Source: Tubulanus polymorphus (lineage: Eukaryota; Animalia; Nemertea). Taken from it: a stretch of 64,000 bases of DNA. The notes beneath the pieces were generated by a model. It made no database searches, had not been told where the DNA came from, and saw nothing but the letters and a program-made list of their open reading frames with translations. How positions within the stretch are numbered: the stretch's first letter is position 1; the number at the start of each line of letters is the position of its first letter. Location: the NCBI RefSeq assembly GCF_964204645.1, contig NC_134032.1, positions 10,218,275 to 10,282,274 of the forward strand, in the 5' to 3' direction. The position numbers and the translations under genes are program-made. Shown here piece by piece: positions 16,106 to 41,028 of the stretch.

Positions 16106-16290
16106 ATGGCGACCGCAGGTAAAGTTTGGGTCGGTTCTCGACTTGTTTCTGAAATTTCTCGGGGTATTTGAATTATTTTGACGTGACATCGCCGCAATAA
16201 TTCTACTTCAAATATTTCAGGTCACAGACCCAATAGAATTCACGAGTTGTCGCAACCGAAACGAATAACGAAAGGTTTTATCGAAGACCG
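16106..16290 (+). CDS. THEG-like gene exons 1-2, first duplicate copy
   Basis: ATGGCGACCGCAG|gt (16106-16118) and exon 16221-16290 give MATAGHRPNRIHELSQPKRITKGFIEDR; the phase-2 donor fits the exon at 38498. Confidence 0.75.
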
Positions 16291-17647
16291 GTAAGTTGAT
16301 TGAAACACTCGCTTGCCACAGCCGATCATCTTTCTTTAAATTACTTTCGCCGTAATTTTGCAGCCCAGTGGTTCTACTAAACTTCGCCTTTTTCCACTTC
16401 TGCTGTTATAATGTCACAGCATCAATAGTGTCGACAGTCAATAATGTCTCAAATATTTTTGGGCATTTTGGTTGCGCTACCGATATTAGTTGCCCATTTT
16501 CTAGGTTTATAGGCCTATCAACATTTAGAAAAAATAGTGCCTGAATGATTGATTACAATTTTGAAAAAATGGAGGCCTGGTGGTGGGTAAGTTGCATCCT
16601 ATCGGAGGGACCAGGCCAGATAGAAGACCAGTTTTCTTTCAGTTCCGCTGACTTGCACTTAGGCCTAGGCCCTATAGGCCTATAATAGAACTATCTGTAC
16701 TCGTTTTGGGTATTAAACAAATCTTCAGAAATTACATGAAGTCCTGCAAATGCAGAGCGCAATTTTTTTTACGACATGATCTGTACAAATCTGAAAGATC
16801 CAACTTTTTATAGTAGAAATATTAACGGTTCTCGCTTAAACCTATAGCGTATAGATTACTAATTCAACTGTATAAATATGTAATCAGGGATTATTCGTAG
16901 TCGTAATTCAATTATTGGTGTCTTGACACCCGACTGACAATAATACAATAACAGCGCTTATAATGACCAGTGTTTGACCAGTACTTGACCCTGAGACAAA
17001 TATTGAATCTAACATACGATTAACATACAGTATTGTATTCATTCACCGTTAGATCACGGACTCTAGTAGGCCTATAAACCCGTTTGAGACTCCCCTGTTA
17101 ATAAATACAGTAAGGATTAAATTTTTGTGGCTCGAAAATACTTCTGCGGCTCTTCGCGTAGGAAACAATAGTTTTAATTAGACGAGAAGATACACAATAT
17201 CCGTGTATGATGATAACGAGAGAAATCCCACAATAACGAAGCCAAGATTGAAAAATTCTATATCAGAATGATAGTATATAAGGAGCGACGAGTTTCGGCT
17301 AGCAACTGTTAGCCATCATCAGGCATACTGAAGTTTTACTTGTTTTAAGGAAATGATACCTCGTTTCTCATCTCAATCGGCCAGGTCATTTTGTGAACTG
17401 CTATAGAATTTGTAATCAGTACATTTCTATAGTGCTAATTGCTCGGTCTGTTATGGTTAGCTTGATCGTGATTTCAAAAAAAGTTATCTTCTTTATCTTC
17501 TTGTCATCTAGATAAACAAGCCAACCTATGATAAGGCTTACAAGACACATTGACATTTACAAGTACAACAAACATGTGATAAACCGGTACGACTAATTCC
17601 GATTGGATTAAATTGAATTAAGATGAATTATTAGGAATTGCGAAGTT

Positions 17648-17884
17648 TCATTGCCGCTGATATGAATCCGAAAACACTAGAGTTACAACACGACTATTAC
17701 TTAATAGAATTTTGATTTCATCGATATTTGACAAAAGATAGATGTCTAGTCCTAAAATAGCATTGATCTTAGAAAAAAGGTCATTATGTAGATCAACGTA
17801 TTTGAGACAAATGCACACGAAATGTACCTCTGTTTCAACTTCATTCGATGTACATGCAACACATATTCTTTGTTCAATTGGCAA
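17648..17884 (-). mobile_element. LINE ORF2 C-terminal fragment (CCHC zinc knuckle); second copy at 24923-25159
   Basis: RICVAC..EVETEVHFVCIC..Y motif, typical of the 3' end of non-LTR ORF2. Confidence 0.7.
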
Positions 17885-17889
17885 TATAG

Positions 17890-17891
<2 letters not shown>

Positions 17892-17968
<77 letters not shown>
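17892..17968. repeat. (TA)n microsatellite; second copy at 25167-25243
   Basis: Pure TA run of about 77 bp. Confidence 0.98.
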
Positions 17969-17975
<7 letters not shown>

Positions 17976-18619
17976 CTCGAAATTAATAAATGCTTCCTCT
18001 AAGCCGTTAATGATAAAATTGAATTATATTAACAGACTTGAGAACATGGAACTATGTTATGCACGTAAGCCTACCAATATAGAACAGAAAAGTGCCTCGA
18101 ACAAACTACCGATAATCGCTGCTACATGAAAATTACCGATTTAAACCAGTTAATTATGGCCCCCAAATGCTTGGAAAACGTATCTAAGCACCTATGAATG
18201 TAAAATTTTTCTGGGAGAGTGCCCCCAGACCCCCCGTTCTTGATATGAGCTCGAGCCTTCGGCGCTCGTGCCACCATGCTTTAATTTCGAACCAGCGAGA
18301 ACACTGCGGGTATATAAGAGGTTGGCTGGGTGAAATTTAAAGCTCCACAGAATGAAAAGCGAGGTATCAATTTCTTTAGCCAAAGGGTTTTCTTGGCGGT
18401 GCATCCTCCTTTAGGTGACGCCTCAGCTGAATCTGAACGTAGGCCATGAATTCGACCACCGGAAACGATAACGATTGACAAGCACCTAACGATATAATTT
18501 CGAATCGAAAAAACTCAGTTATTCGAAAGAATCCTTTTTATTTTTGCGGCGGAGTTATAGAATAACGCGTTACATGCCTATATCTCATTGACCGGCCACA
18601 GGGAGGGCGCGTTTGATGA

Positions 18620-20267
18620 TTACGGCTTAACGAGTTGCTCATCGAAGTCGATAGGCATAACTTCGCGTATCATTCCATTTTCCATACCAGTCTGAGTAGA
18701 ACAGTCGATGTCCTTGATGTCAGCTTCTGTGACGCCATAAGGTTGAGAACAGCTACCAAGTCTAGGCGTTCCTTTGTACGTATACACTGAAACAAACAGC
18801 AGTCCGGTGTGTGAATTCAACCTGATCCCGCACAACCGCACAACTTTTTTTGCTAAGGGTTCTTTAAGGTGGGATGGCAACATCAGGGAATTTTCTTTTC
18901 GTTTTTCGAAAAAAGTGAAATTTTGTAAAGTAGCGAGAAATCTGGGAAATTTGTTTGAGGCTGCTAGATCGCGCGTAAAATCAAACAGTTTTCGCTGTGT
19001 TCTTAGCAGATCAGGGAAAACAATGCGCGTGTCAGGGAATAAGCATGTCAATTAAAGGTGGCCGGCCTGTATTGTTTTAGTGCCAGCTGGCTAAATGTTG
19101 CATTTGCCGCGTCATAAGTGCTGAAAAGTGTAAATTATACACAGCTACAGACGATGCATACATACCAAACAAGATGTGTGTTTCTCCTTTTTTGAGGCCG
19201 GGGTAACCGCACAGGGACCCGGTAGCTGCGGTCGACACGACCGTCAGAGGGTTTGCCTCCATGGCATCCGCGGGCTAAAATATTCACGCAAAGTACTCAA
19301 AGATTAATTCAGAGAAAATAAGCTAGCTTAGTATATTATGTATTGGTGTAGAAATATTTCGAATGTTACTAAGGCCTTTTTTCTAATTGTTTGGAGTACA
19401 GAGTTTTTCAAGAAAAGAGTGGGAGAGCGAAGGGAAGAAAAATTGGAATTAAAAATTTGTTTATAATAGGCGTTTTCAAATGGAAGGGAACAGGAAGAAA
19501 AATAAGAATGAATGTTTTTTTTTTAAATTATTACAGTATATTCCGCATAAAACTGCAGGAGAAAACATTAAAAAGGAGTGAAAATTGTGATGAATTTGAT
19601 ATGAATGATGGGAGAAATGAAAAAAAAACTTTTTTGCAAATTACAACTTATTAGATTGAAAATCGGACGGACGTATTAAAAAAAATGTTTCTTTTACTGA
19701 AAATTTGTGACGAAAAACAGAAAAAATCTGTTTTTAATTTGGTGATTTTTGCACAATTCGGGGTCAGGGAGACAGATCCGTATTCCATGTAATTAGAAAA
19801 AGAAGGCCTAAGCGTGTAAATAATGAAAAATCGTAATCAGACATGTTAGTTTGATCGTGAAATCAGAAACTAGATGTATTTTCTTCCAACAGTGCAGTAG
19901 TGATTCAGATGGAAATATGTCAGAGGTTTGTCTACGAGCGTTTAAGAGTCAATGCCTCTCACCTTGTAGTATTTCTCGGCGTCTATCTTATAGAATACCG
20001 TTGCAGCATTGACGTTGCCTGGCGTCCTTTCTTTCGATAGGATTTTCGCTTTCAGGACTTTCGGCATTTATGGAAAAGAAAAACAAGTGATTTTGAATTG
20101 TACGCGTACTTGAACCTATCGATTTCCCTCAGAGATCCAACTGGTGATGTAAACGTACCGTATTTGGAAGTGCAGAATTTGTATTTCAGCGTTCTTTGCC
20201 TGCAGCGACACGACAGGGCGGCCGACGATAAGGCCATGAACACTAATACAGCTAGCAATAGTTTCAT
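18620..20267 (-). CDS. Single-domain TIMP/NTR-like secreted protein, copy 1 (mature N-terminus C-R-C)
   Basis: Exons 20267-20159, 20057-19963, 19274-19166, 18786-18620: signal MKLLLAVLVFMALSSAALS, then CRC..FCTSKY|VLKAKI..YKID.EKYYK|..TAATGSLCG..L..G.THILF|VY..RLGSC..DC. Six Cys spaced as in N-TIMP. Confidence 0.88.
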
Positions 20268-20344
20268 TGTTTTTTTTTTATCTCTGATACCGAAGACGCA
20301 ACGAAAATGCTGGAGCATTTATAATGAAAATAGAGAAAGCTTTG

Positions 20345-20526
20345 AATGAAGAAGTCCGACAATTCAAATTTGATACGATGAAATTTATCGAAATGAAGCC
20401 GCTGCGTTTTCAGCTGTTGACTAACAGCCATAATCTACCTGGATGATGGCTGTTGACAGCGGAATGTTGTGGTTTCATTTAATGAATTTTATCGTATCGA
20501 ATTTTGATTGTGGGACTTCTTCGTTC
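20345..20526. mobile_element. Palindromic MITE-like insertion in the TIMP-like 5' UTR intron (copy at 27620-27801; remnant near 32778)
   Basis: GAAGAAGTCC..CAAATTTGATACGATGAAATTT...AATTTTATCGTATCGAATTTTG..GGACTTCTTC hairpin. Confidence 0.65.
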
Positions 20527-20819
20527 ATCAACAGTTTATACGGATAAGACAGTTTTTTAGACGACTACATGGCAAATTATTTATTGAAGGCGTTATTGAC
20601 GGTATCGTGTGATCCGATTCAAGAAAGATTGTTCGAAAATAATCAGAAAATACGCTGAAATTATTCCAGGAAGTAGTAGATTTTCAAACACTGAGCAGGG
20701 GGTTCGAGACCCCCTTATACTCCCCTCGGGGTAGGCTACCCCTTCCACCTGTAGAGTTTGGTTACAGATTAGAATTCGATGTTAATTGTTTATGAGAACG
20801 AGAAAAAGGTAAAACTCAC

Positions 20820-20918
20820 CTTGTCGAGAAACTTATACGCACAGCGATGACGATAGTAGTTAGCTTGACAGGTAAAAATGGTGACTAGACGCGAACTAGT
20901 TATTCCTGGGTTTATATA
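20820..20918 (-). promoter_or_regulatory. TATA box and non-coding first exon of the TIMP-like gene; equivalent TATA boxes at 28186, 33638 and 37506
   Basis: Minus-strand TATATAAA at 20911-20918, Inr-like CTAGTC about 25-30 nt downstream and donor AAG|GTGAGT near 20819; conserved in all four paralogues. Confidence 0.75.
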
Positions 20919-22328
20919 CGACGGGAATGTAATGACCGTTATTATAGTAATCTATATCCAAACGGTAAATATTGTTGATTGCGTGATCCTAAATATGCGA
21001 CAAACATCGATGATGGGAACCGTCTGAAAAGGGACAGTTACGTAATGGCAATTTAAAAAATGAAAACCTATATTTCTGATTGAAAATAGCACACAACTTT
21101 TGTAAAGCTTTAAGATTGATCATTCTTAAGTTTTAAGGACGATTTGGCCCCGATTTTGGATCAGACTTGAGTTAAATTTGGCCATTACCTAATTAGAGAG
21201 CGCGTTCACACATAAACCAATCACTCGATACTAAAAAATGCTCAAACAAAGCGAAGTTTCCGGTACTAATTGCAATTGACACGCAATAAGTTGACCCGTG
21301 CTAAAATTTAGCTCGGGCCAAACAGGCTTGGGTCCGTTAGGCACTTGTGTGTACATTTTTTTTCTTTGAATATCATGTTTTTTCATGAGATTGAAGTAAA
21401 TTCGCTGCGACGACATCCCGTTAAAAATTGACAATTGGCCGCGGCAATCGATCGCCTCCAACGCGCCTGTGTACACAGCAAACATGACTCTCTTCATTTA
21501 TGAAAATGATCTAGATGTTTCCGCCACTTAACGATGATATTCATATAAAACGATTTCGTATTCGTCACGAATCATTTGACCTCCGGGGGCTCATGATATA
21601 GCTAGTATTCGAAATATATTTAAACGCAGTTACGTCAAAACGAACAACTTATCATGATTTATCATTGATATATCTACATCGAGAAAAATAGACGATATTT
21701 GTGACTTGTCCTCTTAATTATGTCAATATAGACTATTCAGAATGCAAATTGTTTTGTATAAACCATGTGGGAATCTATGTCGATATCAGCAGCATGCCTA
21801 GATTTTGCGCGAATGAGACTGCCAGAAACAATAAAGACTGATTAACACCATGGAAATCGCCAATCGGGGAAAAGTAGGGGAAGTTTCTTTTCTTTGAAAT
21901 AGTCGTGTAAAAGTCTGGGAATTTTGTTTAAAAAAATGCAAGCTGAACCTCGGGAAATAGTCAGGAATATTTGTTGAGGACGCTGGTTAAATACGGTGAC
22001 CAAGTTACCATCATTTGTGCCGAAAACTACTGCAAAGGGAGACACTAAGGTTAGGTAGTCTGATCAACTGTCCTCTATCTTAGATGGCTCCCATTCCCTC
22101 TTCCCTTCCTCTAAAATTCTATCCTAAGTAAAATGGCGTTTGTGTTCAAGCGTGAAAAATTGTAAGTCTCAGAATTCAGATTTGAAGGTTACATCCAGTT
22201 CAAGAAATGCCCTGTCCATCTACTGGCATGCGAGGTCTAAGCCCTCTTCCCACCCTGAATAACAATTAAAATGAATTTTTGATAATACATTTAATTGAAA
22301 AATTTTTGATTTTGTTTTTTTTTTCCAG

Positions 22329-22343
22329 TTGGATATGATGTAA
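22329..22343 (+). other. Duplicated XRCC5 terminal exon (LDMM*), followed by a duplicated 3' UTR and polyA signal
   Basis: TTCCAG|TTGGATATGATGTAA, identical to 15054-15068; AATAAA near 23010. Confidence 0.85.
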
Positions 22344-23380
22344 GAAGAAAGTTCCAACCTTTATTCGAGTGAAATTCAAGGCAGCATCCGAATATTCCGC
22401 GCATAAAAAAATGTTTTAGATTGTTAAACGTGTGCACATGTGTGCATGCAAGTTTATTGGACTTGGTTGTGTAGAATCCTGAAAAAATTTAGGCCCCTAC
22501 TGAAAGTTCAACAGAAAGTTTGTTGGAACTGTTTAAATTTCTTTTTACCGCAAATTCAGTTAAAGGGTGGGTGGATCGAGCTGTCACCACTTGAGCGGTA
22601 CACGTGGATGAACGAAGTTCAAATATGAAAGGATCCTTTATTTCGGACGTACGGAAAATTACATTTTGAATCTCCACACATGCTCAGATTGCTGGATTGC
22701 AGGCTAGCAGAAAAATTTTCTTGGGCGCCCCTCAAACCCAGCCCTCTATGGTGTTGTGATAGTGGAACGAGCAGTACCCAGTAGGGACTGAGTTCCACAG
22801 AAATCCCACAAAATCATATTAATTAGTCCTGTTTTGATATTCATTAATCTTGTAATATTCACGAAACTGGTTAGAATATTTACCTGTATTATTCATGGCT
22901 CAATGTTAATTAAAAATGTATTAAATATTATGTTTTCTTTCATTAAAGTTTTACTTTTGTATAGATTTAGTTAAAGCGTAAGAATCATCGTACATCATTT
23001 GTATATGTGAATAAAAAATACTATGAAAAATGAGTTGAATTTTTATGCTTTTGGTTGTGAGGAGATGCAGTGCGGAGTAGGCACGGTGATGGTCAAGTTC
23101 ATAATGTGGTCCATGGTTGTCTCATAATAGTACCTAGGATACTGGGGTCAAAAACCTTTTTTATCAGGCCCCTGCAGGTTGTCTGGGTCCGAGAATCTAA
23201 ACCATGGGATGTAAAGCTAGGCGTACACACTAAATTTTGCAGTGTTCTACAATCGTAGTGCACTTAATTTCTTGTTGACAGTCTTGCTATGGTCCTACCG
23301 GACTTTTCGCTGCCACTACAGATTGAGAAAGTCCATATCCGTAGATTAGTGACAACCTTCCTTGACAACATACAAACAAG

Positions 23381-25164
23381 ATGGCGACCGCAGGTAAAGT
23401 TTGGGTCGGTTCTCGACTTGTTTCTGAAATTTCTCGGGGTATTTGAATTATTTTGACGTGACATCGCCGCAATAATTCTACTTCAAATATTTCAGGTCAC
23501 AGACCCAATAGAATTCACGAGTTGTCGCAACCGAAACGAATAACGAAAGGTTTTATCGAAGACCGGTAAGTTGATTGAAACACTCGCTTGCCACAGCCGA
23601 TCATCTTTCTTTAAATTACTTTCGCCGTAATTTTGCAGCCCAGTGGTTCTACTAAACTTCGCCTTTTTCCACTTCTGCTGTTATAATGTCACAGCATCAA
23701 TAGTGTCGACAGTCAATAATGTCTCAAATATTTTTGGGCATTTTGGTTGCGCTACCGATATTAGTTGCCCATTTTCTAGGTTTATAGGCCTATCAACATT
23801 TAGAAAAAATAGTGCCTGAATGATTGATTACAATTTTGAAAAAATGGAGGCCTGGTGGTGGGTAAGTTGCATCCTATCGGAGGGACCAGGCCAGATAGAA
23901 GACCAGTTTTCTTTCAGTTCCGCTGACTTGCACTTAGGCCTAGGCCCTATAGGCCTATAATAGAACTATCTGTACTCGTTTTGGGTATTAAACAAATCTT
24001 CAGAAATTACATGAAGTCCTGCAAATGCAGAGCGCAATTTTTTTTACGACATGATCTGTACAAATCTGAAAGATCCAACTTTTTATAGTAGAAATATTAA
24101 CGGTTCTCGCTTAAACCTATAGCGTATAGATTACTAATTCAACTGTATAAATATGTAATCAGGGATTATTCGTAGTCGTAATTCAATTATTGGTGTCTTG
24201 ACACCCGACTGACAATAATACAATAACAGCGCTTATAATGACCAGTGTTTGACCAGTACTTGACCCTGAGACAAATATTGAATCTAACATACGATTAACA
24301 TACAGTATTGTATTCATTCACCGTTAGATCACGGACTCTAGTAGGCCTATAAACCCGTTTGAGACTCCCCTGTTAATAAATACAGTAAGGATTAAATTTT
24401 TGTGGCTCGAAAATACTTCTGCGGCTCTTCGCGTAGGAAACAATAGTTTTAATTAGACGAGAAGATACACAATATCCGTGTATGATGATAACGAGAGAAA
24501 TCCCACAATAACGAAGCCAAGATTGAAAAATTCTATATCAGAATGATAGTATATAAGGAGCGACGAGTTTCGGCTAGCAACTGTTAGCCATCATCAGGCA
24601 TACTGAAGTTTTACTTGTTTTAAGGAAATGATACCTCGTTTCTCATCTCAATCGGCCAGGTCATTTTGTGAACTGCTATAGAATTTGTAATCAGTACATT
24701 TCTATAGTGCTAATTGCTCGGTCTGTTATGGTTAGCTTGATCGTGATTTCAAAAAAAGTTATCTTCTTTATCTTCTTGTCATCTAGATAAACAAGCCAAC
24801 CTATGATAAGGCTTACAAGACACATTGACATTTACAAGTACAACAAACATGTGATAAACCGGTACGACTAATTCCGATTGGATTAAATTGAATTAAGATG
24901 AATTATTAGGAATTGCGAAGTTTCATTGCCGCTGATATGAATCCGAAAACACTAGAGTTACAACACGACTATTACTTAATAGAATTTTGATTTCATCGAT
25001 ATTTGACAAAAGATAGATGTCTAGTCCTAAAATAGCATTGATCTTAGAAAAAAGGTCATTATGTAGATCAACGTATTTGAGACAAATGCACACGAAATGT
25101 ACCTCTGTTTCAACTTCATTCGATGTACATGCAACACATATTCTTTGTTCAATTGGCAATATAG

Positions 25165-25250
<86 letters not shown>

Positions 25251-28200
25251 CTCGAAATTAATAAATGCTTCCTCTAAGCCGTTAATGATAAAATTGAATT
25301 ATATTAACAGACTTGAGAACATGGAACTATGTTATGCACGTAAGCCTACCAATATAGAACAGAAAAGTGCCTCGAACAAACTACCGATAATCGCTGCTAC
25401 ATGAAAATTACCGATTTAAACCAGTTAATTATGGCCCCCAAATGCTTGGAAAACGTATCTAAGCACCTATGAATGTAAAATTTTTCTGGGAGAGTGCCCC
25501 CAGACCCCCCGTTCTTGATATGAGCTCGAGCCTTCGGCGCTCGTGCCACCATGCTTTAATTTCGAACCAGCGAGAACACTGCGGGTATATAAGAGGTTGG
25601 CTGGGTGAAATTTAAAGCTCCACAGAATGAAAAGCGAGGTATCAATTTCTTTAGCCAAAGGGTTTTCTTGGCGGTGCATCCTCCTTTAGGTGACGCCTCA
25701 GCTGAATCTGAACGTAGGCCATGAATTCGACCACCGGAAACGATAACGATTGACAAGCACCTAACGATATAATTTCGAATCGAAAAAACTCAGTTATTCG
25801 AAAGAATCCTTTTTATTTTTGCGGCGGAGTTATAGAATAACGCGTTACATGCCTATATCTCATTGACCGGCCACAGGGAGGGCGCGTTTGATGATTACGG
25901 CTTAACGAGTTGCTCATCGAAGTCGATAGGCATAACTTCGCGTATCATTCCATTTTCCATACCAGTCTGAGTAGAACAGTCGATGTCCTTGATGTCAGCT
26001 TCTGTGACGCCATAAGGTTGAGAACAGCTACCAAGTCTAGGCGTTCCTTTGTACGTATACACTGAAACAAACAGCAGTCCGGTGTGTGAATTCAACCTGA
26101 TCCCGCACAACCGCACAACTTTTTTTGCTAAGGGTTCTTTAAGGTGGGATGGCAACATCAGGGAATTTTCTTTTCGTTTTTCGAAAAAAGTGAAATTTTG
26201 TAAAGTAGCGAGAAATCTGGGAAATTTGTTTGAGGCTGCTAGATCGCGCGTAAAATCAAACAGTTTTCGCTGTGTTCTTAGCAGATCAGGGAAAACAATG
26301 CGCGTGTCAGGGAATAAGCATGTCAATTAAAGGTGGCCGGCCTGTATTGTTTTAGTGCCAGCTGGCTAAATGTTGCATTTGCCGCGTCATAAGTGCTGAA
26401 AAGTGTAAATTATACACAGCTACAGACGATGCATACATACCAAACAAGATGTGTGTTTCTCCTTTTTTGAGGCCGGGGTAACCGCACAGGGACCCGGTAG
26501 CTGCGGTCGACACGACCGTCAGAGGGTTTGCCTCCATGGCATCCGCGGGCTAAAATATTCACGCAAAGTACTCAAAGATTAATTCAGAGAAAATAAGCTA
26601 GCTTAGTATATTATGTATTGGTGTAGAAATATTTCGAATGTTACTAAGGCCTTTTTTCTAATTGTTTGGAGTACAGAGTTTTTCAAGAAAAGAGTGGGAG
26701 AGCGAAGGGAAGAAAAATTGGAATTAAAAATTTGTTTATAATAGGCGTTTTCAAATGGAAGGGAACAGGAAGAAAAATAAGAATGAATGTTTTTTTTTTA
26801 AATTATTACAGTATATTCCGCATAAAACTGCAGGAGAAAACATTAAAAAGGAGTGAAAATTGTGATGAATTTGATATGAATGATGGGAGAAATGAAAAAA
26901 AAACTTTTTTGCAAATTACAACTTATTAGATTGAAAATCGGACGGACGTATTAAAAAAAATGTTTCTTTTACTGAAAATTTGTGACGAAAAACAGAAAAA
27001 ATCTGTTTTTAATTTGGTGATTTTTGCACAATTCGGGGTCAGGGAGACAGATCCGTATTCCATGTAATTAGAAAAAGAAGGCCTAAGCGTGTAAATAATG
27101 AAAAATCGTAATCAGACATGTTAGTTTGATCGTGAAATCAGAAACTAGATGTATTTTCTTCCAACAGTGCAGTAGTGATTCAGATGGAAATATGTCAGAG
27201 GTTTGTCTACGAGCGTTTAAGAGTCAATGCCTCTCACCTTGTAGTATTTCTCGGCGTCTATCTTATAGAATACCGTTGCAGCATTGACGTTGCCTGGCGT
27301 CCTTTCTTTCGATAGGATTTTCGCTTTCAGGACTTTCGGCATTTATGGAAAAGAAAAACAAGTGATTTTGAATTGTACGCGTACTTGAACCTATCGATTT
27401 CCCTCAGAGATCCAACTGGTGATGTAAACGTACCGTATTTGGAAGTGCAGAATTTGTATTTCAGCGTTCTTTGCCTGCAGCGACACGACAGGGCGGCCGA
27501 CGATAAGGCCATGAACACTAATACAGCTAGCAATAGTTTCATTGTTTTTTTTTTATCTCTGATACCGAAGACGCAACGAAAATGCTGGAGCATTTATAAT
27601 GAAAATAGAGAAAGCTTTGAATGAAGAAGTCCGACAATTCAAATTTGATACGATGAAATTTATCGAAATGAAGCCGCTGCGTTTTCAGCTGTTGACTAAC
27701 AGCCATAATCTACCTGGATGATGGCTGTTGACAGCGGAATGTTGTGGTTTCATTTAATGAATTTTATCGTATCGAATTTTGATTGTGGGACTTCTTCGTT
27801 CATCAACAGTTTATACGGATAAGACAGTTTTTTAGACGACTACATGGCAAATTATTTATTGAAGGCGTTATTGACGGTATCGTGTGATCCGATTCAAGAA
27901 AGATTGTTCGAAAATAATCAGAAAATACGCTGAAATTATTCCAGGAAGTAGTAGATTTTCAAACACTGAGCAGGGGGTTCGAGACCCCCTTATACTCCCC
28001 TCGGGGTAGGCTACCCCTTCCACCTGTAGAGTTTGGTTACAGATTAGAATTCGATGTTAATTGTTTATGAGAACGAGAAAAAGGTAAAACTCACCTTGTC
28101 GAGAAACTTATACGCACAGCGATGACGATAGTAGTTAGCTTGACAGGTAAAAATGGTGACTAGACGCGAACTAGTTATTCCTGGGTTTATATACGACGGG

Positions 28201-31200
28201 AATGTAATGACCGTTATTATAGTAATCTATATCCAAACGGTAAATATTGTTGATTGCGTGATCCTAAATATGCGACAAACATCGATGATGGGAACCGTCT
28301 GAAAAGGGACAGTTACGTAATGGCAATTTAAAAAATGAAAACCTATATTTCTGATTGAAAATAGCACACAACTTTTGTAAAGCTTTAAGATTGATCATTC
28401 TTAAGTTTTAAGGACGATTTGGCCCCGATTTTGGATCAGACTTGAGTTAAATTTGGCCATTACCTAATTAGAGAGCGCGTTCACACATAAACCAATCACT
28501 CGATACTAAAAAATGCTCAAACAAAGCGAAGTTTCCGGTACTAATTGCAATTGACACGCAATAAGTTGACCCGTGCTAAAATTTAGCTCGGGCCAAACAG
28601 GCTTGGGTCCGTTAGGCACTTGTGTGTACATTTTTTTTCTTTGAATATCATGTTTTTTCATGAGATTGAAGTAAATTCGCTGCGACGACATCCCGTTAAA
28701 AATTGACAATTGGCCGCGGCAATCGATCGCCTCCAACGCGCCTGTGTACACAGCAAACATGACTCTCTTCATTTATGAAAATGATCTAGATGTTTCCGCC
28801 ACTTAACGATGATATTCATATAAAACGATTTCGTATTCGTCACGAATCATTTGACCTCCGGGGGCTCATGATATAGCTAGTATTCGAAATATATTTAAAC
28901 GCAGTTACGTCAAAACGAACAACTTATCATGATTTATCATTGATATATCTACATCGAGAAAAATAGACGATATTTGTGACTTGTCCTCTTAATTATGTCA
29001 ATATAGACTATTCAGAATGCAAATTGTTTTGTATAAACCATGTGGGAATCTATGTCGATATCAGCAGCATGCCTAGATTTTGCGCGAATGAGACTGCCAG
29101 AAACAATAAAGACTGATTAACACCATGGAAATCGCCAATCGGGGAAAAGTAGGGGAAGTTTCTTTTCTTTGAAATAGTCGTGTAAAAGTCTGGGAATTTT
29201 GTTTAAAAAAATGCAAGCTGAACCTCGGGAAATAGTCAGGAATATTTGTTGAGGACGCTGGTTAAATACGGTGAGAATGAAATGTTTGTGGCTCAAATTC
29301 TTGCGCAGCTTGTTGGAACCCAAAAATTATTCGTTTGAAAAAATAATGATACCTCATTTCTCATAATTGGCCGGGTCATTTTGGGAAAAGCTGCGATGAA
29401 ATTTAAAATCAGTTCATTTCTATAGTGCCAACTGCTGGGTCTGCTATGGTTAGCTTGATCATGATTTGAAAAAAAAAATTAATTTACAGGGTTTATAAGA
29501 GGTTGGCTGGGTCAACCTAAAAGCTCCGCGGAATGAAAAACAAGTTATCAATTTCTTTAGGCCTTTTTTAATAGCTTGGTTTACGGGGTAGACCTATTGG
29601 AATATCATTTTGGAGGAGGAAATAAAAAATTTTAAAAGAATTCCCTTAATTAGATAAAATCACTTTTTGAAGGAAGAGAGAACTGTCGATAGGGCAATGT
29701 AGCCTATGTCCAAACAAATGATTCTTGGAAGTTCGAATTCTGCACACTGTGATCAAAACAGAACCTCGCGTTTTTTAATTATCTTCATCAGTCAAGCCAG
29801 GATTCTCATTCGATGGAGACGAAAAAAATTTTTTTGCTCATTTTTTCACTGAATTTGTTCCACGAACGGGAATTTGAAAAAGAAATTAATTTTTATTTGA
29901 CTTTTCTTCAAATTTCGGGAGGCGGTTCCCGTAAACGAAGCTATTCAAAAAAGGCCTTTGGGGGTCATTCATTTATAACGTACGCATTAGGGAAGGGGGA
30001 GGGGTCAGTGCAATTGCATACTGTAAAGCTTAATGTATATGAAAAAATGGCCGATTTTGTGTATAGAAGGGGAGGGGGGTTGAAAAATTCAAATTTTATG
30101 CCTACGTAATTAATGAATGATCCCTTAGCTGAAGGGTTTTATTGGTGCGGTGTATCCTCGGTTAGGCGACGCCTCAGCTGAGTCTGAATGTAAACCATGT
30201 AAACGATGATGATACGGAATTAGACGACCAGAAACAATAACGCCTAACACCTGCAAACACAAACACCTAACGATATTTTTTCAAATCGAAAATATTCAGT
30301 TACTCGAAAGTATCCTTTTTATTTCTGCGAAGAAGTAATAGAATAACGCGTACATCTTATTGAGCGGCCACAGGGCTGTGGCTTTACGAGTTGCTCGGCC
30401 TAATTTCGTGTACGACTCCATTTTCCATACCAGTCTGAGTAGAACAGTCGATGTCCTTGATGTCATTTTCTGTGACGCCGTCAGGTTGAGAACACCTACC
30501 AATTCTCGGTTTTCCTTTGTACATATACACTGAAATGAACAGCAGTGAATACAACTAGATCCCACACAACCGCATTACTTTTTTGCCAAGGTTTCCATTT
30601 AGCGGGGTGGCCAAACTTACGTGGCAATGGAGGGAACGTCAGGGAATTTTCTTTTCTATACAAGAGTCGGGGAATATAGTTGGGGAATTTTATGAAATAG
30701 CTAAAAACCGAGGAAATTTGATTGATGCTGCTAGATCGTGCGTAAATCAGTTTCCGTCTAGCCTATGTCTTACGTATTTGACTGTGATGATTGATTTGAT
30801 TCTTAGCAGATCAAAAGTCAGGGAAAACAACGTGCATCTCGGGGAATAAGGAAGTAAAATTAGGTCGGCCAGCTTGTAGGGCTTTAGTGCCAGCTGGCTA
30901 TTGCCTTCACTCCAAGCAGTTACAATGTCTATCATGGGCTCGATTCACAAGCAAAATACTGTTTTTTTCCGCGCCACAAGTGCTGGAAGGTGTGAACCAT
31001 TTCAGTGCATCTACACCATAGTGCGGTGTATAAATCGGTGATCTTGGATTTTGCTAGTACACTGCACTGCAGTGTATTGCTGTTATTAGTAATAAGTTTT
31101 TATCTCTATAGAAAAACGGCAGCACCTGTCAAACATAGTGAAATATTAGTAACTATTGATACACCGCACCACGGTGTAGACGCACTATAGTAGACTTCCC

Positions 31201-34200
31201 GCTCTTCAACACACTAGGGTGAAATTTATCAAAATTTTCAAATTATCTCCAGCACTATAGGGTATCATTTAGTCAGCACTGAAAGGGTTAATAAGGGCTA
31301 TATACAGCTTCAAACCATGCATACATACCAAACAAGATGTGTGTGTCTCCTATTTTGAGACTGGGGACACCGCACAGAGACCCGGCGGAAGCAGTCGATA
31401 CGAGCGTCAGAGGGTTTGTCTCCATGCCATCCGCGGGCTAAATATCCGCAGCGAAATATAATCAAATGCATAGTACTTTAAAATCAATTCAGAGAAAATA
31501 AGCTAGCTTAATATATTATGTATTGGTGTAGAAATATTTAGAATGTTACTAAGGCCTTTTTTTAATTGCTTGGGGTATGGAGTTTTTCAAGAAAAGAGTG
31601 GGAGGGTGAAGGGAAGAAAAATTAGAATTAAAAAAGTTTTCAATAGGTATTTTCAAATGGAACAGGAAGAAAAATAAGAAATAATGTTTTTTTTTTTAAT
31701 TATTTGAATATTTTCCTCATAAAACTGCAGAAGAAAATTAAAAAGGAGTGAAAATTGTGATGAATTTGATTCTAATGATGGGAGAAGTGAAAAAAGAACT
31801 AACTTTTTTCGCAAATCACAAGATTGAAAATTAAGATGAACATTTTAACTTTAACAAGTCGCTAGATTGAAAATCAGGACTGACTGACTGACTTATTTCT
31901 TTTATTGAAAATTTGTGATGAAAATACGAAGGAAGACTTATAAATGAGTCAGTTTTCGTCAGTTTGATGATGTTTGCTGAATTCTGGGAGGCAGATCCGT
32001 ACTCCAAGTAATTAGAAAAAGGCCTTAGCGTGTAAGTAGTTAAAATATCGTAATCAGACATGTTAGTTTGATCATGAAATCAGAAACTAGATGTTTTTTC
32101 TTCCAACAGTGCAGTAGTGATTCAGATGGAAATATTCCAGAGGTTTGTCTACGATCGTTTGAGTCAAAGCCTCTCACCTTGTAGTATTTCTCAACGTCTA
32201 TCTTATAGGATACCTTTGCAGCAAAAATGTTGCGCGGCCTCCAATGTCTTGATTCAATTTTCGCCTTCACGACTTTCGGAATTTATGAAGAAAAAAAAAC
32301 AAGTGATTTTGAATTGTACGCGTACTCGGGGTCCGATCTAAGGAATAAAAACCATCTGAAATTTTACTTGCCCCCTCAAAAATCTATTTGCCCTACACAA
32401 GCAGTCCAACTGTTGTATCGATTGGAAAATGGCTTCAAGATATAAAAACACACTAGCCTGAGGGACAATTGATAATGACAACCTACTTGCCCTAATGATT
32501 ATATACCTTGTCCTGGGCAATCGGACAAGTGCTTAGAATGGACCCTGGTACTTGATAGATCCAAGCGGCAACATGAACCTACCGTATATGGAAGTGCAGA
32601 AATGATATTTCAGCGATCTTTGTCTGCAGTGACACGACAGGGCGGCCGACGATAAGGCCATAAACACTAATACAGCTAGCAATAGTTTCATGGTATTTTC
32701 GAATCTCTGATACCGGAGACGCAATGAATATGCTGAAACATTTATAATGAGAATACATCTAATTATTTTTTTTAAGTGAAGAAGTCCGACAATTCGAATT
32801 TGATACGATGAAATTTATTAAAATGAAACCACAGCGTTTTCAGCTTTTGACTAACAGCCATTATCATCATCATTCCAGCAGCTGTTGATGGCTGTTATTC
32901 ATCAGCTGAAACGTTTTTGTTTCAGTTATGAATCTTTAATAAATCTTAAATCCTCTATTTATCACATTTGCTCAATATAGGCCTATTTCAAAGCAATCAT
33001 CTGCATTGTCATTCGCACACCTATTCTGGTAGTGGGAGTGGCTGATTTTCAGGGGGTGAATGTAAAAATGAAAGGGGTGACCGCCCCTCTAAAACCTGTG
33101 GTGGAGAACACTGAATGCCCTTAAAAATTGGATGATCATCGGGTTTACTGTCTGGGTCTGCCTATGCATAATTGCTTAATCACCGCTACACGACCTTTTC
33201 ATCTGCTTAAATTATTTATATCGATTGCTGAAATATGCGCTCCAGTCTCTATTGTTCATTAACAGACGATGGCTGTTAATCAACACCTGAAATGTTATGT
33301 TAGGTTCCAAGGTACGTTTCCAGATATTGGAGCAGAGGGGGGTCAAACACCGTGTTTCCGAGTTTCAATTTTTTTCACCTACAGTAATTTCTGGCGGATG
33401 CTGAAACAGCGATTGATTAGAATTTTGGTTAGTTACCGGTAATTAGATCGATATCACCGTCGGAAAGTTTTCAAACACCGAGCAGACGTGGTACCCCTTT
33501 CCATCTTACAGTTTGGTTACAGATTAGAGTTCAACGTTTTACGAGAAATAAGTAAAACTCACCTTGCCGAGAAACTAAAACGCACAGCGGCGGCGATAAT
33601 AGAAAAAATGGTGACTAGATATTCTGGTTATTCTGGGTTTATATACGACACACAGGAATGTAATGATTGTTATTATAGCAATCTATATCGTAACGGTAAA
33701 TATCAATGAATGCGTCCTAAATATCCAATAAACATCGATGATGGGAACCGTCTAATTTGATACGTAACAATTTGATACGTCCAATTTGATACGGGACAGT
33801 TACGTAATGGCAATTTTAGAAAAGAATACCCATATGTCTGATTGAAAATAATAAATGTGGTGGTCGTAAAGCTATAAAGTATGATCGATTTTAGATTCAA
33901 AGGCGCGATGACACGGGGACGATTTGGTCCGGATCGGACTCGAGTCAAATTTGGCCCGTGCCTAATTAGAGAGCGTGTTCACGCGTAAATCACTCACTCG
34001 ATGCTAAACAATGCTCAAACAAAGCGAAGTGGGTCATTTCAGGAACCAGTTGCAATTGACACAAGTTGCAATTTCTCACTCCAGTTGCAATTTTTCGCGG
34101 ATGGAAATTGTTTTGTATGATCCTTGTGCGGGAATCTATGTCGTTATCAGCAACGTAAACCTCGCGTGTAACGCAAATGTGACCGCCACGAACAATGATG

Positions 34201-37200
34201 ACTCGTTAACACACGGAAATCGGGGTAAAGTCAGGGAAATTCCTTCTTTTTTTTAAAGTCAGGGATTAGTCAGGGAATTTTGTTAGAATAAAGCTAAAAT
34301 TAAGGGTAAAGTCGTGGATATTTGTTGAGATTGCTAGATCACACGTGAAATCAAACAGTTTCCGTTTGTATCTTACGTATTTGACTGTGTTAATTGAATG
34401 GATTCTTAGTAGATTGATTCAGGGAAAACTACGTGCATGTAGGGGAATATTGCAGGGATAAAACAAGTCTAATAAAACTTTTTTTTAAAAACAATAATTA
34501 TTTTCTTCCTTTTTAGATTTCTTCAATAATTCAATCAACAATTATCAATATTAAAGTTTATTTTTGCGAATAATTGTCTTTCATTTCTGCAGTGAAAGCT
34601 TGATATAATAACACATCAATACGACTGCGTGGTCAGTGTTTATGGGTTCACTAGTTGCTTGTCGAAATCGATTATCTCGATTGTATCTTTTATGTGATGA
34701 TCCATATCCGTTGTGGTAGAGCAGTCGATGTCCTTGATATCATCTTCTTTGACGCCACGAGGCGACGAACATATACCGATTCTCGGCGCGTTTTTGTACA
34801 TATACACTGAAAAAAAATCGGCAATCCATATTGAAAATGTATTGGTTTGAAGTAAGTCTGCTACTACAGTGCTGCTGGGTGCTATTTTTGTGGAAAAATT
34901 AGATTTTTTTTTAAAGACAAATATCGTGAAATATTGGAATGATCCACAATCTGTATGAACCCTTAGATTTAAACCATTCCGTGCTGCCTAATTAATACCC
35001 GAAAATGCTGGGGGGGTGGAATTCAAAAATTCCACCCCACTGTGTTTTTAAAGGGCATACCACTTTAGTGCGTCTACACCGTGGCGTGGTGTATTGTAAG
35101 TTACTAATATTTCACTTTGTTTGACAGGTGCTGCCATCTTTCATTAGAGATAGAAAACTGATTACTAATAAAATCAATACACCATTATGCGATGTACTAG
35201 CAAAGTCATCACCGATTGATACACCGCACTGCGGTGCCGACACGCTGAAAGGGTTTAGAGTAAAATGTTTGATAACTCTAATACGGTACATACCAAACAA
35301 GATGTGTGTTTCTCCTTCTTCAAGATAGGTGACTCCACACAGGGACCCGGCAGCTGCGGTCGATATGAATTTCACAGGGTTGCTTTCCATGCCATCCGTG
35401 GGCTAAATATTCGCAGTGAAATATAATCAAACAATGCGCTTAAGAATCAATTCAGAGCTGTTTGAATATCAGGTCTTTTTTATTAATTACTAGGAGTATG
35501 GTTTCTTTTTTCAAGAAAAATTGTAGGGTACATTGAATTTTTTCATGACAGGCATTTCGAAGTGGAAGGGCATATGAAAGAAAAAATTAAAATTTTTTTT
35601 CATCGTTCTAGAATTTTCCATGTCATAAAATCTAAGAAGGATTGTCGAAAATTAATTCTAACAGGAGTGAAAATTGTGATGAATTTGATTCAAATGATGG
35701 GAGAAATGAAACAAACTTTTTGCAAAAAGCTCGATTGAAAATTCAAATGACCATAACAAAGAAAATTTTTTTTGGGGGGGGGAAATTGTGATGAAATTAT
35801 GGAGGACAAATTTTTTTCAATTTATTTCTTCTAATAATATTTCTTGAGTTAATAGTGATTTTAATGGGAATATGCTTTATGATTCAAAGTTTTCTTAAGG
35901 GTATTTTCTCGATATTTGTGTTTTGATTAGTTGATTATATCGACTTACCTTGTAGTATTTCTTTACGTCTAACGTGTAGACAATATTCGCCTGGTTGATG
36001 TTGCCCGGTGACTGTTTTTTCGTCAGGATTTCCGCTTCCACGACTTTTGAGAAATGAAAAATGAGTGATTTTGAATTAGGTAATTGAACATATCAATTTC
36101 CTTATAGCTCTTCCAGTTACATGAATAAGGCGGCCACTTGCACCTGGAAATCAGGGAAAGGTCGGGGAATTCCCTTTTCTTTAAAAAAAGTCAGGGAATA
36201 GTCGAGGAATTTTGGAAAAAGCTAAAAATCAGGGACATTTTTTAGGATTGCTAGATCGCGCGTAACATCAAACACCGTCTATGTCTTACGTATTTTCTGT
36301 GTTAATTGATTGGATTTTTTAGCAGATCAAGTCATGGAAAACAAAAAAAGTCGAATAAAAGTGGCCGCCCTGATCAACCTACCATATTTGGAAGTGCAGA
36401 AATGATGTTTTAGCGATCTTCCACCGCAGCTACACGACAGTACAGCCGATGATAAGGCCGCGAACACTAATACAGCTAGCAATAGTTTCATGGTTTTTTT
36501 TCCGAATCTCTGATACTGAACACGCGACGAAAATACTGAAACACCTATAATAGAAATAAAGCAATTTATTCGTTTTTCAAGAATGTACGTAAATCCGATC
36601 GGGTCAGCGGTAAATACATCTAAATCAAGAAAACTAACTTGAAAGTTTTTTGTTGACTTCAAAAAAATAACAAATTACTCCCTAATACTATTGAATAACA
36701 TAATATGATATTAAGGACCACTAAGTTATTTTAAATTTTAATATATCGACAATTGAATTGAATTGACCTGCTAACCCTATTATTTATGATGTAGTGCACA
36801 TCCTCTCAAAATTAATCATTAAAAAGACATGAAAAACTATCGAATGGAAAATAAAAAGGAGTCAAATATCTTAGAAAAAATATCTTAAAAAGTCTTTATA
36901 TGTATTTGATTACGAAGTGAACGCCAAAATTGTAATTGTTATTTTGAAACGCCAATATTGATGATGTAGTGCGCATCAAATCACAGAGAACCCCTTAAAT
37001 AATGCACACTAGGTATCAATGTATATATCAAACATTTTTTCAACTATTTTTACGGCATCAAAGAATTAGATGAAAATTGTATCATATATGCGATGTGATG
37101 GAAATTGACTGGAACGAATTCGACTGAAAAATTTGATTGTATCCACTAAAATGAAAAATGAATATTTCTGGATATTCATAGGCCGATACCATTCATGTCA

Positions 37201-40200
37201 CTCCCTAATCTTCTACTGCCTAGTTCTATTGATATGTTGAGAATCCCACAATGATAACGAAAAAAAATTATGTTATATTCATCTTCAGGAATTTACCAAA
37301 CTGTTTTGTGACTGTTAGAATATAATCGAAACATTGAATAAATGACAAGCTCAAGGAATGCTGATTAGAGATTATTGATGTTAATTGTTTATGAGTATTA
37401 AAGAAAAACTCACCTTGTCGAGAAGCTAATGCGCACAGCGATGACGATAATATTTGGCCAGACTGTAAAAAATTGGTGACTAGACGCGAACTAGTTATTC
37501 CTGGGTTTATATACGACGCAAGAGAGTAATGGCCGTTATTATAGCAATCTATATCCTAACGGTAAACATTGATGATTGCGTCCTAAATATCTGACAAATA
37601 TTTGTAATGGGAACTGTCTGAACGGGGGACACAACATTATGGCCATTGAGAAAAAAAAGGAAAGAAAACCATATCTCTCTGACTAAATGTCACGCTAAAA
37701 CTAGAAATATGCAAAACTGAAGTATGATTGATTTTGAATTTGTATACGCATAGCAAATATATGTCTCTTCGCTGAATTGAAAATAATCTAATCGTTTAAC
37801 CACTTACTGTGCAACATTATTCATGAACGCAGTAATCATTAGTCAGCGAATCATTCGACCTCCGGGGCTCATGATATAGGTGGTATTTAAAGAATAGTTA
37901 CGCGGTTACGTTTAACCAACAATTTATCGTAGTCTATCATTGATATATTTACATGGGAAATGATAGATGTCGTTTATTACGTCAATATAGGCTAGTCATA
38001 CGAATGGAAATTGTTATGTTTTCGTAAAAACTTCGTAAATCTGTGTTACCATCAGCGAATTACCTAAACGTTGCATGTAAGGCATCGCGTCTGTCAAAAT
38101 AGGTCGAAAAAAGGGTTTGAAATAAACGGAATCATTAATTCGATCTTACATGCTCATTGGGTGTGTCCTTTACAAGCTCGTGCCAGGGAAAAAATCAGAT
38201 TCTGGTTGCAATTTCGATAAAAAAAAGGCAATTTCGGAATTTACTGACCGCCTGAAAATTAGTTTTTCTTATCAATACCCATAAATATTGTCGTGAATCT
38301 TTTCTCGCAATGCAATTTTTCGTTTCCGAATTTTTGCTCGCCGAAAAAATTTTTCCTTTCAATCGCTGGAAAATTTTCTCCAAGAGACAAAAGATAGAAA
38401 TACTCATCAGTCACATCTTTAATACATTTTTTTTTCTAAAGGGAATCTAACCTGTTGTCAATTTGTTTCAAGCGGAAAAAATTCTCTCTAATTTCAGTCA
38501 TTCGGTTTACTGGGTCGATAAACTACCTCCGAAACCGGGTCCAGATGGCGTCACTGTCTGCGGTAAGTATTCGAAAAATAATGGCAATTTTTGAACATAT
38601 ATGACTAACCCTATCAGTACCGACTAACTAACAGCCCTAACTTCTTTTAATGCAAGGTTTCTTCATGTGCCCCACCATCTTGAATTCTTGTATTTCTATT
38701 GTACAATTATCATAACTCGAAATGCTTAATAAATCTATAATTTTTTTTCCAGTTCTTACCCCGCGACAGCAACAGCTTGTTTACAACAAACGCGTTCATC
38801 AGGATTATAGGGGAGACAGGTAGGAACCCTGATAGATACATTTATCTAAGAAAATCTAAATTATTTCTTCAAACAAAACTTGAGTATGCCTCAAGAAATA
38901 TCTAATTATTTCTAGTTTGTAAATTTAGAGTTAAACTACCTGCTGGCAAAACATTCTCCTCAGATCCAATGTAGCTTTGATTCTCCCAGTCCAGAACACT
39001 ATTCCATGGACTTTGCAGGGCATGTCCATTATCCTTGTTCTTCAAAACACCTGGAAAAATAGTTTAATTGATTTATTGTAGTTAAATTGTGTAATTCTAT
39101 TTGTTTTCAAATGTTGATGATCTGAAATTTCCAGGATTTATTCCTAAAGTCCAAGACTTGTTTAAATGTTTGTTTATTTTCACCATATTCGTCTAATTTT
39201 TTCTCCAGCGGCGTCAAAGCGACTCCTGATGTTTTCCTGATCAGGTACCTCAAGCAATCCATTATTTTATATCTAACAATTGTTTTTAACAGCTTTATTC
39301 ATTGGATTTTGATGGGAAAGAATATTTACGATGTTTCTATTCAAATTAGAAGTGTGGAATTTTAAAGGGAATTAAAAATTCATTGTTAAGTGTATTCACA
39401 TAGCGTGGCTGGTGAAGTAGCAAGGCTTTCGATCCCCCAAAAATACAGCAAAATTAAGCTTAACTTTTTGGTGTAATCTATTTTTCGCATTAGTTCAATA
39501 TTTCAAAGCAATTATCAGCATTGATAGAATATTAACATCCAGGGAGCATAGAGGCAGCAGATATTTTATTTTTTGCAAGGATTGGCTTGATTTTCAGAGG
39601 GGTGGATGTAAAAATCAAAGGGCTGACCGCCTCTCTAAAACCTGTTGTTGGCGCAAGAAATCTAACAACTTACGATCGGAATGAAACTTAGATCAGCAAA
39701 ATAACTAACTGTTAACTAACTGTGGCTTAATATACAATTCGTAGAGTATTCAACGACTAAGCATTGACAAATACTAACCCTGACATAACCATTTCAGATT
39801 GTTTCTATCTAATGCCTTTTTTTGATATGTAATTACTGACAAAAGCAGCGGGATTTCAACATCAATAAATGCACTTAAGTTTTACATGCTTTTGAATAAT
39901 GTTGGTGTGTCTTTTTCTTTTAATTTTTGTCTAAACTTTTCGTTAAAATTTGACTGTAGGGTTTAAGTATTTGGATAGAAACCAATTTCAACTCTAGCTT
40001 GTAAAACTTATACCAGTATCTACGCGACTGGATCCAAGTCACGTAAGCTCAAAATAGTTAAGTTTCAGTTATTTTCTGAATTGAAAACATGAAGTAACCG
40101 AAGTAACTAAACTAAAAATTTAAGTGTCTCTTCATAAAACCGGACCTGGGCCCAGTTTTATATTATAGTTCTTGGTTAACAGGGTGGCCACTGACCGGGA

Positions 40201-41028
40201 AAACCTGGGAAAGTCAATGTAATAAAAAAATCAGGGGAAACTAAAGGAATTTGATGAATTTTACCCGAAAAATTAATGAATTTTTAAGTTTTATACCTTA
40301 CAATTTCTCTGAATCACTTAGGGATTTTAGTGTAACCACAAGGACAAATCAGGGAAAACTTAAGGGATTTGAAAATGGTTCAAAATTTGCCATACTGGTC
40401 AAATTTGTTGGTAGAGTTTAAATTTATTCACTGGACTTAAATCTCACAAGAATATTCATCTATTTTCAGACCGAGTCCGATTTGGCCGGTGAGCGGCGCG
40501 GCTAAGAAGGCATCGGCGTCGGCGCATGTTGAGAACCTGGCGCGCCACAAACCCGTGCACCGCCAGTACATGTACGACCGCCCGGTGCAGACCTTCATAC
40601 CGGAATCGGCAAAAAAAGTTGAAGCGACGCCGCGTATCGAAGCCTTGGCGCGCGCCAAAACCTATCACCCGTTGCCGATTCTCGATCTCCGCGAGTGGGA
40701 CTGGTCGGACTGGAACGAACGCGTGCCGAAGAAGGCCTTGTCGGCGCACTGCTCCGGCCGCATCGAAGACTTGGCGCGTGCTAAAACCTTGCACAGAGAT
40801 TTCAGCGCCAACCGTCCGATACAGTGGGACGTGGCGCCGAGCGCGCAAAAGGCGCAGGCCTCTGCGCGTATAACCGCGTTGGCGCTGGCGAAAGCGCGCG
40901 TCAGCCTGAACGACGAGTACGACCCGTATAAGGTACCGCTCGGCGCCAAACATTGCCAGGCGACTCCGCGCGTCCAGGAACTCGCCGTACCACTTCCAAG
41001 GAAATGCCGGCAGAAGAAAATCGTTTAA
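23381..41028 (+). CDS. Testicular haploid expressed gene (THEG/SPMAP2)-like repeat protein, 5 exons
   Basis: Exons 23381-23393, 23496-23565, 38498-38562, 38753-38819 and 40470-41028 join in phase: ..RIHELSQPK..EDR|HSVYWVDK..|LTPRQQQL..DYRGDR|PSPIWPVS..ATPRIEALARAK..RIEDLARAK..ATPRVQELAVP. These are typical THEG repeats. Confidence 0.85.
25895..27542 (-). CDS. Single-domain TIMP/NTR-like protein, copy 2 (identical to copy 1)
   Basis: Exons 27542-27434, 27332-27238, 26549-26441, 26061-25895. Confidence 0.85.
30384..32691 (-). CDS. Single-domain TIMP/NTR-like protein, copy 3 (C-H-C)
   Basis: Exons 32691-32583, 32272-32178, 31437-31329, 30529-30384; CHCRQRSLKYHFC..VVKAKI..SAGSLCG..RIGRC..IDC; C-terminal tail 7 codons shorter than copy 1. 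Confidence 0.87.
34640..36491 (-). CDS. Single-domain TIMP/NTR-like protein, copy 4 (C-S-C)
   Basis: Exons 36491-36383, 36043-35949, 35402-35294, 34806-34640; CSCGGRSLKHHFC..VVEAEI..AAGSLCG..RIGIC..IDC..DFDKQLVNP*. Confidence 0.88.

Follow-up and report, generated by a model that had tools for sequence, protein, structure and literature searches.

Single-domain TIMP-like genes probably nested antisense in an intron of a THEG/SPMAP2-like gene of the ribbon worm Tubulanus polymorphus

Animal genomes commonly contain nested genes, and the pairing of synapsin with TIMP is the textbook example of an ancient and conserved nested gene pair; the locus was reportedly described by Pohar and colleagues in 1999. 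The nest has been followed from Nematostella to human, with two guests in Ciona and ten in the sea urchin, and TIMPs outside synapsin are also known (Candiani et al., 2010; PMC2825198); more data on the nesting status of TIMPs across Metazoa have been called for (Nicosia et al.; PMC4860685). A 64,000-nt stretch of the genome of the palaeonemertean ribbon worm Tubulanus polymorphus (Nemertea; NC_134032.1, record C8 of assembly G000, positions 10218275-10282274 of the forward strand), referred to below as the window, raises the question of whether TIMP-family genes have come to be nested in another host as well. Four minus-strand TIMP-like genes of the window (A, A', B, and C) are associated with intron 2 of a gene resembling THEG/SPMAP2, and we regard it as quite probable that they form a lineage-specific, four-gene family of single-domain proteins, antisense within that intron, which began with an insertion and was then enlarged by tandem duplication.

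The gene structures were taken from RefSeq proteins reached through one-exon protein queries (P0002 and P0007 for the host; P0001, P0008, and P0009 for the guests), and window exons were joined locally only for the exact-mapping check and for substitution rates. Both host isoforms, P0002 (257 aa) and P0007 (269 aa), map to the window exons without a mismatch and with GT..AG introns, and both begin MATAGHRPNRIHELSQPKRITKGFIEDR followed by HSVYW...; their RefSeq name is 'sperm microtubule associated protein 2-like', SPMAP2 being what we take to be the current name of THEG. The open reading frame at 40489-41028 holds three THEG-repeat stretches (Pfam PF14912, 127.9 bits). SPMAP2 has been reported in the doublet microtubules of mammalian sperm (PMC7617938). 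An earlier reading of the window from sequence only had joined THEG exon 2 (..FIEDR, phase 2) to the exon at 38498 (HSVYW..) across an intron of 14.9 or 22.2 kb, and this join recurs exactly in P0002 and P0007: intron 2, of phase 2 and lying within ...FIEDR/HSVYW..., measures 14,932 bp from the second copy of exon 2 and 22,207 bp from the first. The join is supported by the RefSeq model and by an N-terminal peptide conserved in orthologues, with ...DRRSVYW... spanning the same junction in Lineus longissimus and oyster. Over 98% of the query, the host protein is 47% identical to the SPMAP2-like protein of Lineus, and the first three exons are 13, 70, and 65 nt long in Tubulanus and 13, 67, and 65 nt long in Lineus, with identical phases. 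A second THEG-repeat locus was seen at C2:994607-995455, without N-terminal exons.

Each of the four guests has four exons with GT..AG introns and maps exactly to a RefSeq protein (P0001 for A and A', P0008 for B, and P0009 for C), so that the three to four complete antisense genes proposed by the sequence-only reading were all recovered. Genes A', B, and C (25797-36491) lie wholly between the host exons that end at 23565 and start at 38498, on the opposite strand, and gene A does so too if the first copy of host exons 1 and 2 is used. The promoters that the same reading had assigned to each gene were also found, as TATAAA about 45 nt 5' of the ATG in A, A', and B and as TATTATAGG in C. Contigs from sequencing runs were compared over positions 21900-27700 only, wholly within an exact duplicate described below; runs X1 and X2 are DNA-like, X1 possibly being the assembly's own sample, and X5 and X6 are transcriptome runs of 2014 from one sample, belonging to a study other than that of the likely assembly sample. 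In the X5/X6 contigs, A' has splice joints at 26061/26441, 26549/27238, and 27332/27434 (all CT..AC on the plus strand) and a poly(A) end, seen as a run of 25 T before 25797 and situated 20 nt past an AATAAA. The A/A' guest is transcribed, spliced, and polyadenylated in these runs, i.e., it has transcription of its own, an observation that concerns A/A' only; by identity with A', the poly(A) site of gene A would be at 18522. Independently predicted RefSeq proteins match the exons exactly and spliced RNA contigs exist for A/A'; thus, chance is not at issue.

Two departures from the reference were observed at the same gene. At 27513, the 2014 sample has A for the reference G (synonymous, codon 10 of A/A') and run X1 has both letters, and one X5 contig departs from the reference upstream of 27552 (27552-27627), its 5' untranslated region resembling that of paralogue C; together these suggest another allele or an unassembled paralogue. 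Within the Tubulanus genome, close copies of the guest proteins were found in this cluster only. Weak TIMP/NTR-like exons were noted at C10:3004141-3004284, C10:3041891-3042034, and C4:24352251-24352367.

Profile and fold comparisons bear out the family assignments that the sequence-only reading had given to host and guests. P0001 matched the Pfam TIMP profile (PF00965) with 33.5 bits against a cut-off of 23.1, its residues 20-103 aligning to profile positions 3-91, and P0008 and P0009 carry a precomputed PF00965 match; single TIMP-like exons gave no Pfam matches, the pieces being too short. Residue 20 of P0001 aligns to residue 1 of the mature TIMP-3 and TIMP-1 chains and directly follows a predicted signal peptide, with cleavage predicted immediately before the C-x-C motif (MKLLLAVLVFMALSSAALS followed by CRC). 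The mature protein has six cysteines (C20, C22, C32, C90, C117, and C131), of which C20, C22, and C90 are invariant and C117 is nearly so in the protein alignment (A1). Among all 1.84 billion representative proteins read by HMMER, 21 reached E ≤ 0.001; beyond Tubulanus the top hit, at 31% identity, was a TIMP3-like protein of 137 aa from the crinoid Anneissia. The Pfam TIMP profile was matched by 19 of 21 aligned sequences (three Tubulanus proteins and 18 hits). The AlphaFold model of P0001 has a pLDDT of 82.6, with an acidic tail of low confidence, and its top Foldseek match was N-TIMP-3 (3cki_B; E 3.4e-7, TM by target 0.71), followed by TIMP-1 and TIMP-2; the next ~15 were all TIMPs, and other NTR modules came later. 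The C-terminal domain of canonical TIMPs, with its three further disulfides, was not recognised in the guests, which are 152-159 aa long: profile positions 92-183 are unmatched, and translation stops at exon 4, with an AATAAA and a poly(A) end downstream. Sequence and structural model together support the assignment of the guests to the TIMP family as putatively secreted proteins with a single N-TIMP-like domain, ~140 residues long once the signal peptide is removed.

The antisense position of canonical TIMPs in synapsin, on which the sequence-only reading had drawn, is documented (PMC2825198), and such a nest was located in the Tubulanus genome itself. A canonical two-domain TIMP at C3:6194-10311 (minus strand) is flanked by synapsin exons of the opposite strand, at C8:16668710-16675022 and C3:12350-15290 (both plus). 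Synapsin is split over two chromosome-scale records: the very end of C8 carries the exons for the N-domain and the first of those for the C-domain, and the other C-domain exons lie at the start of C3. Record C8 (16.68 Mb; region 16668710-16677571) ends in a 40-bp satellite, which also makes up the first 2,041 bp of C3 (27.8 Mb); thus, the records abut inside a synapsin intron, and a single molecule interrupted at the satellite probably underlies both. Since the canonical TIMP is still in synapsin, the THEG nest is an additional one and not a relocation. No match between P0001 and the canonical TIMP locus was obtained by tblastn at E < 0.1, and the relation is shown by the profile instead. The canonical TIMP and the cluster genes have two intron positions in common, after ..FC-x-S-x-Y (..SDY/..SKY) and after ..YK, which argues for paralogy at the DNA level rather than a retrogene; the cluster genes have one extra intron relative to the canonical TIMP, at ..ILF/VY...

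In Lineus longissimus, the orthologous intron 2 is 352 bp long, interrupts the same codon in the same phase, and holds no guest, and no TIMP was found across the whole 21.7-kb Lineus THEG locus. Because the canonical TIMP stays in synapsin and the short Lineus intron is free of guests, the comparison supports an origin of the THEG nest independent of the synapsin nest, as the sequence-only reading had supposed. Its further proposal of local expansion after nesting also stands: collinearity of units A', B, and C extends into their introns and upstream flanks, at 67-84% identity, and synonymous divergence (dS) is graded, from 0 for A-A' through 0.23 for A-B to 0.54 for A-C and 0.64 for B-C, which supports growth by tandem duplication in place. 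Under the proposed course of events, a DNA-level copy of a TIMP paralogue would have entered a short ancestral THEG intron in the Tubulanus lineage, having lost, or never having had, the C-terminal domain. Three in-place tandem duplications would have followed, with C splitting first, then A from B, and then A from A'; the last would have used a larger unit that also copied the host promoter, host exons 1 and 2, and the terminal exon of Ku80, the neighbouring gene.

Several points weigh against this account, and they concern the host transcript, the guest proteins, and the duplicate. THEG exons 1 and 2 were without RNA contigs in X5 and X6, and no read spanning intron 2 was seen there, in contigs that covered 21900-27700 and in a contig resource (Logan) that cannot demonstrate absence; such missing cover is not surprising for a sperm gene. 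That observation, together with the status of the RefSeq XP_ models as predictions, would suit a nest that exists in annotation only, in which case THEG would start past the cluster, at an unrecognised first exon, and the distal exons would be relics. We judge this very improbable, as exons 1 and 2 keep their ATG, frame, GT/AG sites, the conserved THEG motif, and sizes and phases like those of Lineus, and they are intact although the cluster is old enough for a dS of ~0.6 among its members. Moreover, the exon-2 peptide has a single locus, with no second one elsewhere in the Tubulanus genome, and without exons 1 and 2 the first start codon of the host protein would come no earlier than residue ~106. 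The host is probably active in sperm and the guests in somatic tissue; such a putative separation would make the nesting tolerated rather than functional. No evidence of a function for the nesting itself was seen, and its persistence is compatible with separate tissue expression.

As regards the guest proteins, the Pfam match spans residues 20-103 only, any pairing of the six cysteines into the three disulfides of a TIMP N-domain is putative, that of the sixth cysteine included, and metzincin inhibition is a predicted activity that rests on analogy with TIMPs. Signal peptidase would expose Cys1 of the C-x-C motif, which in TIMPs coordinates the catalytic zinc of metzincins; the N-terminal ridge would block the zinc of the active site, and targets may shift through substitutions at residue 2 and in the loops. 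At residue 2 of the mature protein, A has Arg, B has His, and C has Ser. Vertebrate TIMPs have Thr or Ser at this position, from which the Arg and His differ. The ratio dN/dS is 0.44-0.65 among the guests, whose mature parts have diverged more than their signal peptides; with the variable residue 2, this suggests that target specificities have diverged. The same features could belong to an NTR/N-TIMP fold that is not inhibitory, i.e., a fast-evolving secreted family with a defensive, mucus, or toxin-like role, which we consider fairly unlikely. A conserved signal peptide before a diverging mature part would fit such a family, as would Arg or His at residue 2 in A and B, the scarcity of relatives in the protein search, the high depth of guest contigs in the 2014 RNA sample (depth being a poor measure), and the other uses of the NTR fold in agrin NtA, PCOLCE, and complement. 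However, the top sequence and fold matches of the guests are true TIMPs and not other NTR modules, and Cys1-x-Cys3 immediately past the predicted signal peptide is the inhibitory arrangement.

The duplicate affects how many guests are counted within the host. Positions 14725-21999 and 22000-29274 are identical (7,275 bp without a mismatch, exactly 2.0 copies), and the unit comprises the last exon and 3' untranslated region of Ku80, the THEG promoter, THEG exons 1 and 2, and TIMP-like gene A; no obvious microhomology was found at the duplication junction. Identity of 100% over this length could be an assembly artefact; if it is one, or if a single haplotype carries the duplicate, the locus would have three TIMP-like genes, one set of exons 1 and 2, and a 14.9-kb intron. 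Perfect identity at a whole number of copies speaks for that explanation, and the contig depths, taken wholly inside the duplicate, offer no single-copy baseline; however, the window contains no N, and an X1 unitig starting exactly at 22000 fits two different predecessors in the reads, although X1 may be the assembly's sample and is then not independent. On balance, an artefact or haplotype variant appears unlikely. If both copies are real, only the second promoter (exons at 23381 and 23496) might be used, which would leave gene A and the first-copy exons upstream of the host, with three nested genes instead of four; this we regard as possible, if somewhat doubtful. The copies being identical, either yields the RefSeq protein, and a transcript from the first promoter must, we infer, skip the second exon 2, because inclusion of its 70 nt would shift the frame. 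Against use of the second promoter only, the two are indistinguishable, and identical sequence should act equally unless distal context matters.

The coordinates of the host, the guests, the duplicate, and the adjoining Ku80 exon are collected in Table 1. Ku80/XRCC5 occupies 3893-15620 on the plus strand, upstream of THEG, with Pfam Ku_N, Ku, and Ku_PK_bind on its upstream exons. As its last exon falls inside the duplicate, a second copy of the terminal exon lies within the THEG intron, and an X5 RNA contig splices 14377 to 22329 (equivalent to 15054). Also within the duplicate, 24422-24809 (= 17147-17534) and 23064-23257 (= 15789-15982) are very high-copy repeats in X1 with many loose ends, the summed X1 contig depth reaching 42,656 versus ~50 nearby; these stretches are probably transposon fragments in the host intron, and the open reading frame at 17648-17884 (minus strand) looks transposon-derived too. 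Elsewhere in the window, dispersed direct repeats, 200-300 bp long and belonging to interleaved families (D9-D16), occupy 43311-51901. At 59808-61803, a 64-bp unit is repeated in tandem ~27-30 times, its copies being 90-97% identical, and no other part of the window is GC-rich (GC 0.50 here, with strong negative GC skew).

Table 1. Features of the nested locus, in positions of the window, with the evidence for each
Feature	Position	Strand	Basis
THEG/SPMAP2-like coding exon 1, copy 1 (MATA-G)	16106-16118	+	Exact mapping of P0002/P0007
THEG exon 2, copy 1 (70 nt, phase 2 end, ..GFIEDR)	16221-16290	+	96% tblastn match; P0002/P0007 mapping
THEG exon 1, copy 2 (identical)	23381-23393	+	Exact duplicate, exact mapping
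THEG exon 2, copy 2 (identical)	23496-23565	+	Exact duplicate, exact mapping
THEG exon 3 (HSVYWVDKLPP...), 65 nt as in Lineus	38498-38562	+	Exact mapping
THEG exon 4	38753-38819	+	Exact mapping
Optional 36-nt THEG exon, RefSeq isoform X1 (P0007) only	39209-39244	+	Exact mapping
THEG last coding exon with THEG repeats	40470-41028	+	Pfam PF14912
TIMP-like gene A	18522-20330, coding sequence 18620-20267	-	P0001, 159 aa; TATAAA near 20315-20320; identical to A'
TIMP-like gene A'	25797-27605, coding sequence 25895-27542	-	P0001, 159 aa; spliced RNA contigs
TIMP-like gene B	coding sequence 30384-32691	-	P0008, 152 aa, C-H-C
TIMP-like gene C	coding sequence 34640-36491	-	P0009, 159 aa, C-S-C
Exact tandem duplicate, first copy	14725-21999		Self-comparison of the window
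Exact tandem duplicate, second copy	22000-29274		Self-comparison; X1 unitig begins exactly at 22000
Ku80/XRCC5 terminal exon (..LDMM-stop) and 3' untranslated region	15054-15620; second copy 22329-22894	+	X5 contig

Like the synapsin-TIMP nest, the Tubulanus cluster places TIMP-family guests antisense in an intron of a host with restricted expression, and several guests per intron are known there too; unlike it, the host is THEG/SPMAP2 and the guests are single-domain and strongly diverged, and whereas the synapsin nest is widespread, the THEG nest is absent from Lineus, the only other nemertean examined. The guests share with canonical TIMPs (human TIMP-1 to -4) a signal peptide, the C-x-C, FC-x-S, YK, and LCG motifs, and an OB-fold N-domain, and with the canonical TIMP of Tubulanus two intron positions, but they differ from canonical TIMPs in having no C-terminal domain, an extra intron at ..ILF/VY.., Arg, His, or Ser at residue 2, and an acidic, low-confidence tail. 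In having an N-domain only, they resemble other invertebrate single-domain TIMP-like or NTR proteins, such as Anneissia japonica XP_033106590 and the NTR-domain proteins of nematodes, which are 137-150 aa long and sometimes tandem; guest identity to these is, however, ≤31%. An Anneissia japonica locus (L026, VUNX01031029.1) contains three tandem TIMP genes of 137, 154, and 254 aa, so mixed clusters of single- and two-domain TIMPs occur in a crinoid as well, although, unlike the THEG nest, that cluster has no overlapping host among the called genes.

The sequence-only reading had known of no description of this arrangement, and our literature search agreed with it: no publication found dealt with TIMPs of nemerteans or with a nest hosted by THEG, and none contained both SPMAP2 and THEG; the gene models are already in RefSeq, and only the description of the arrangement is new. 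A broader proposition would be that TIMP-family genes have a repeated, selected tendency to nest antisense in introns of narrowly expressed genes, synapsin in neurons and THEG in spermatids. Were this true, silent host chromatin or host transcription would give the guests insulated or mutually exclusive regulation, and Tubulanus would be a convergent second origin; we hold the proposition to be highly doubtful, and one lineage-specific nest may reflect a chance landing. We take the locus to be a genuine second instance of TIMP nesting, specific to this lineage, and as such a modest curiosity that involves neither a new kind of system nor a new mechanism. In a phylum outside the earlier surveys, the canonical nest has been retained, and another host appears to have acquired a second nest, a young one, made up of divergent single-domain TIMP-like genes. 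The guest-free 352-bp intron of Lineus offers a clean before-and-after comparison, and the locus is well suited to the study of how a nest forms and grows, including the duplication of host exons and of a neighbour's last exon.

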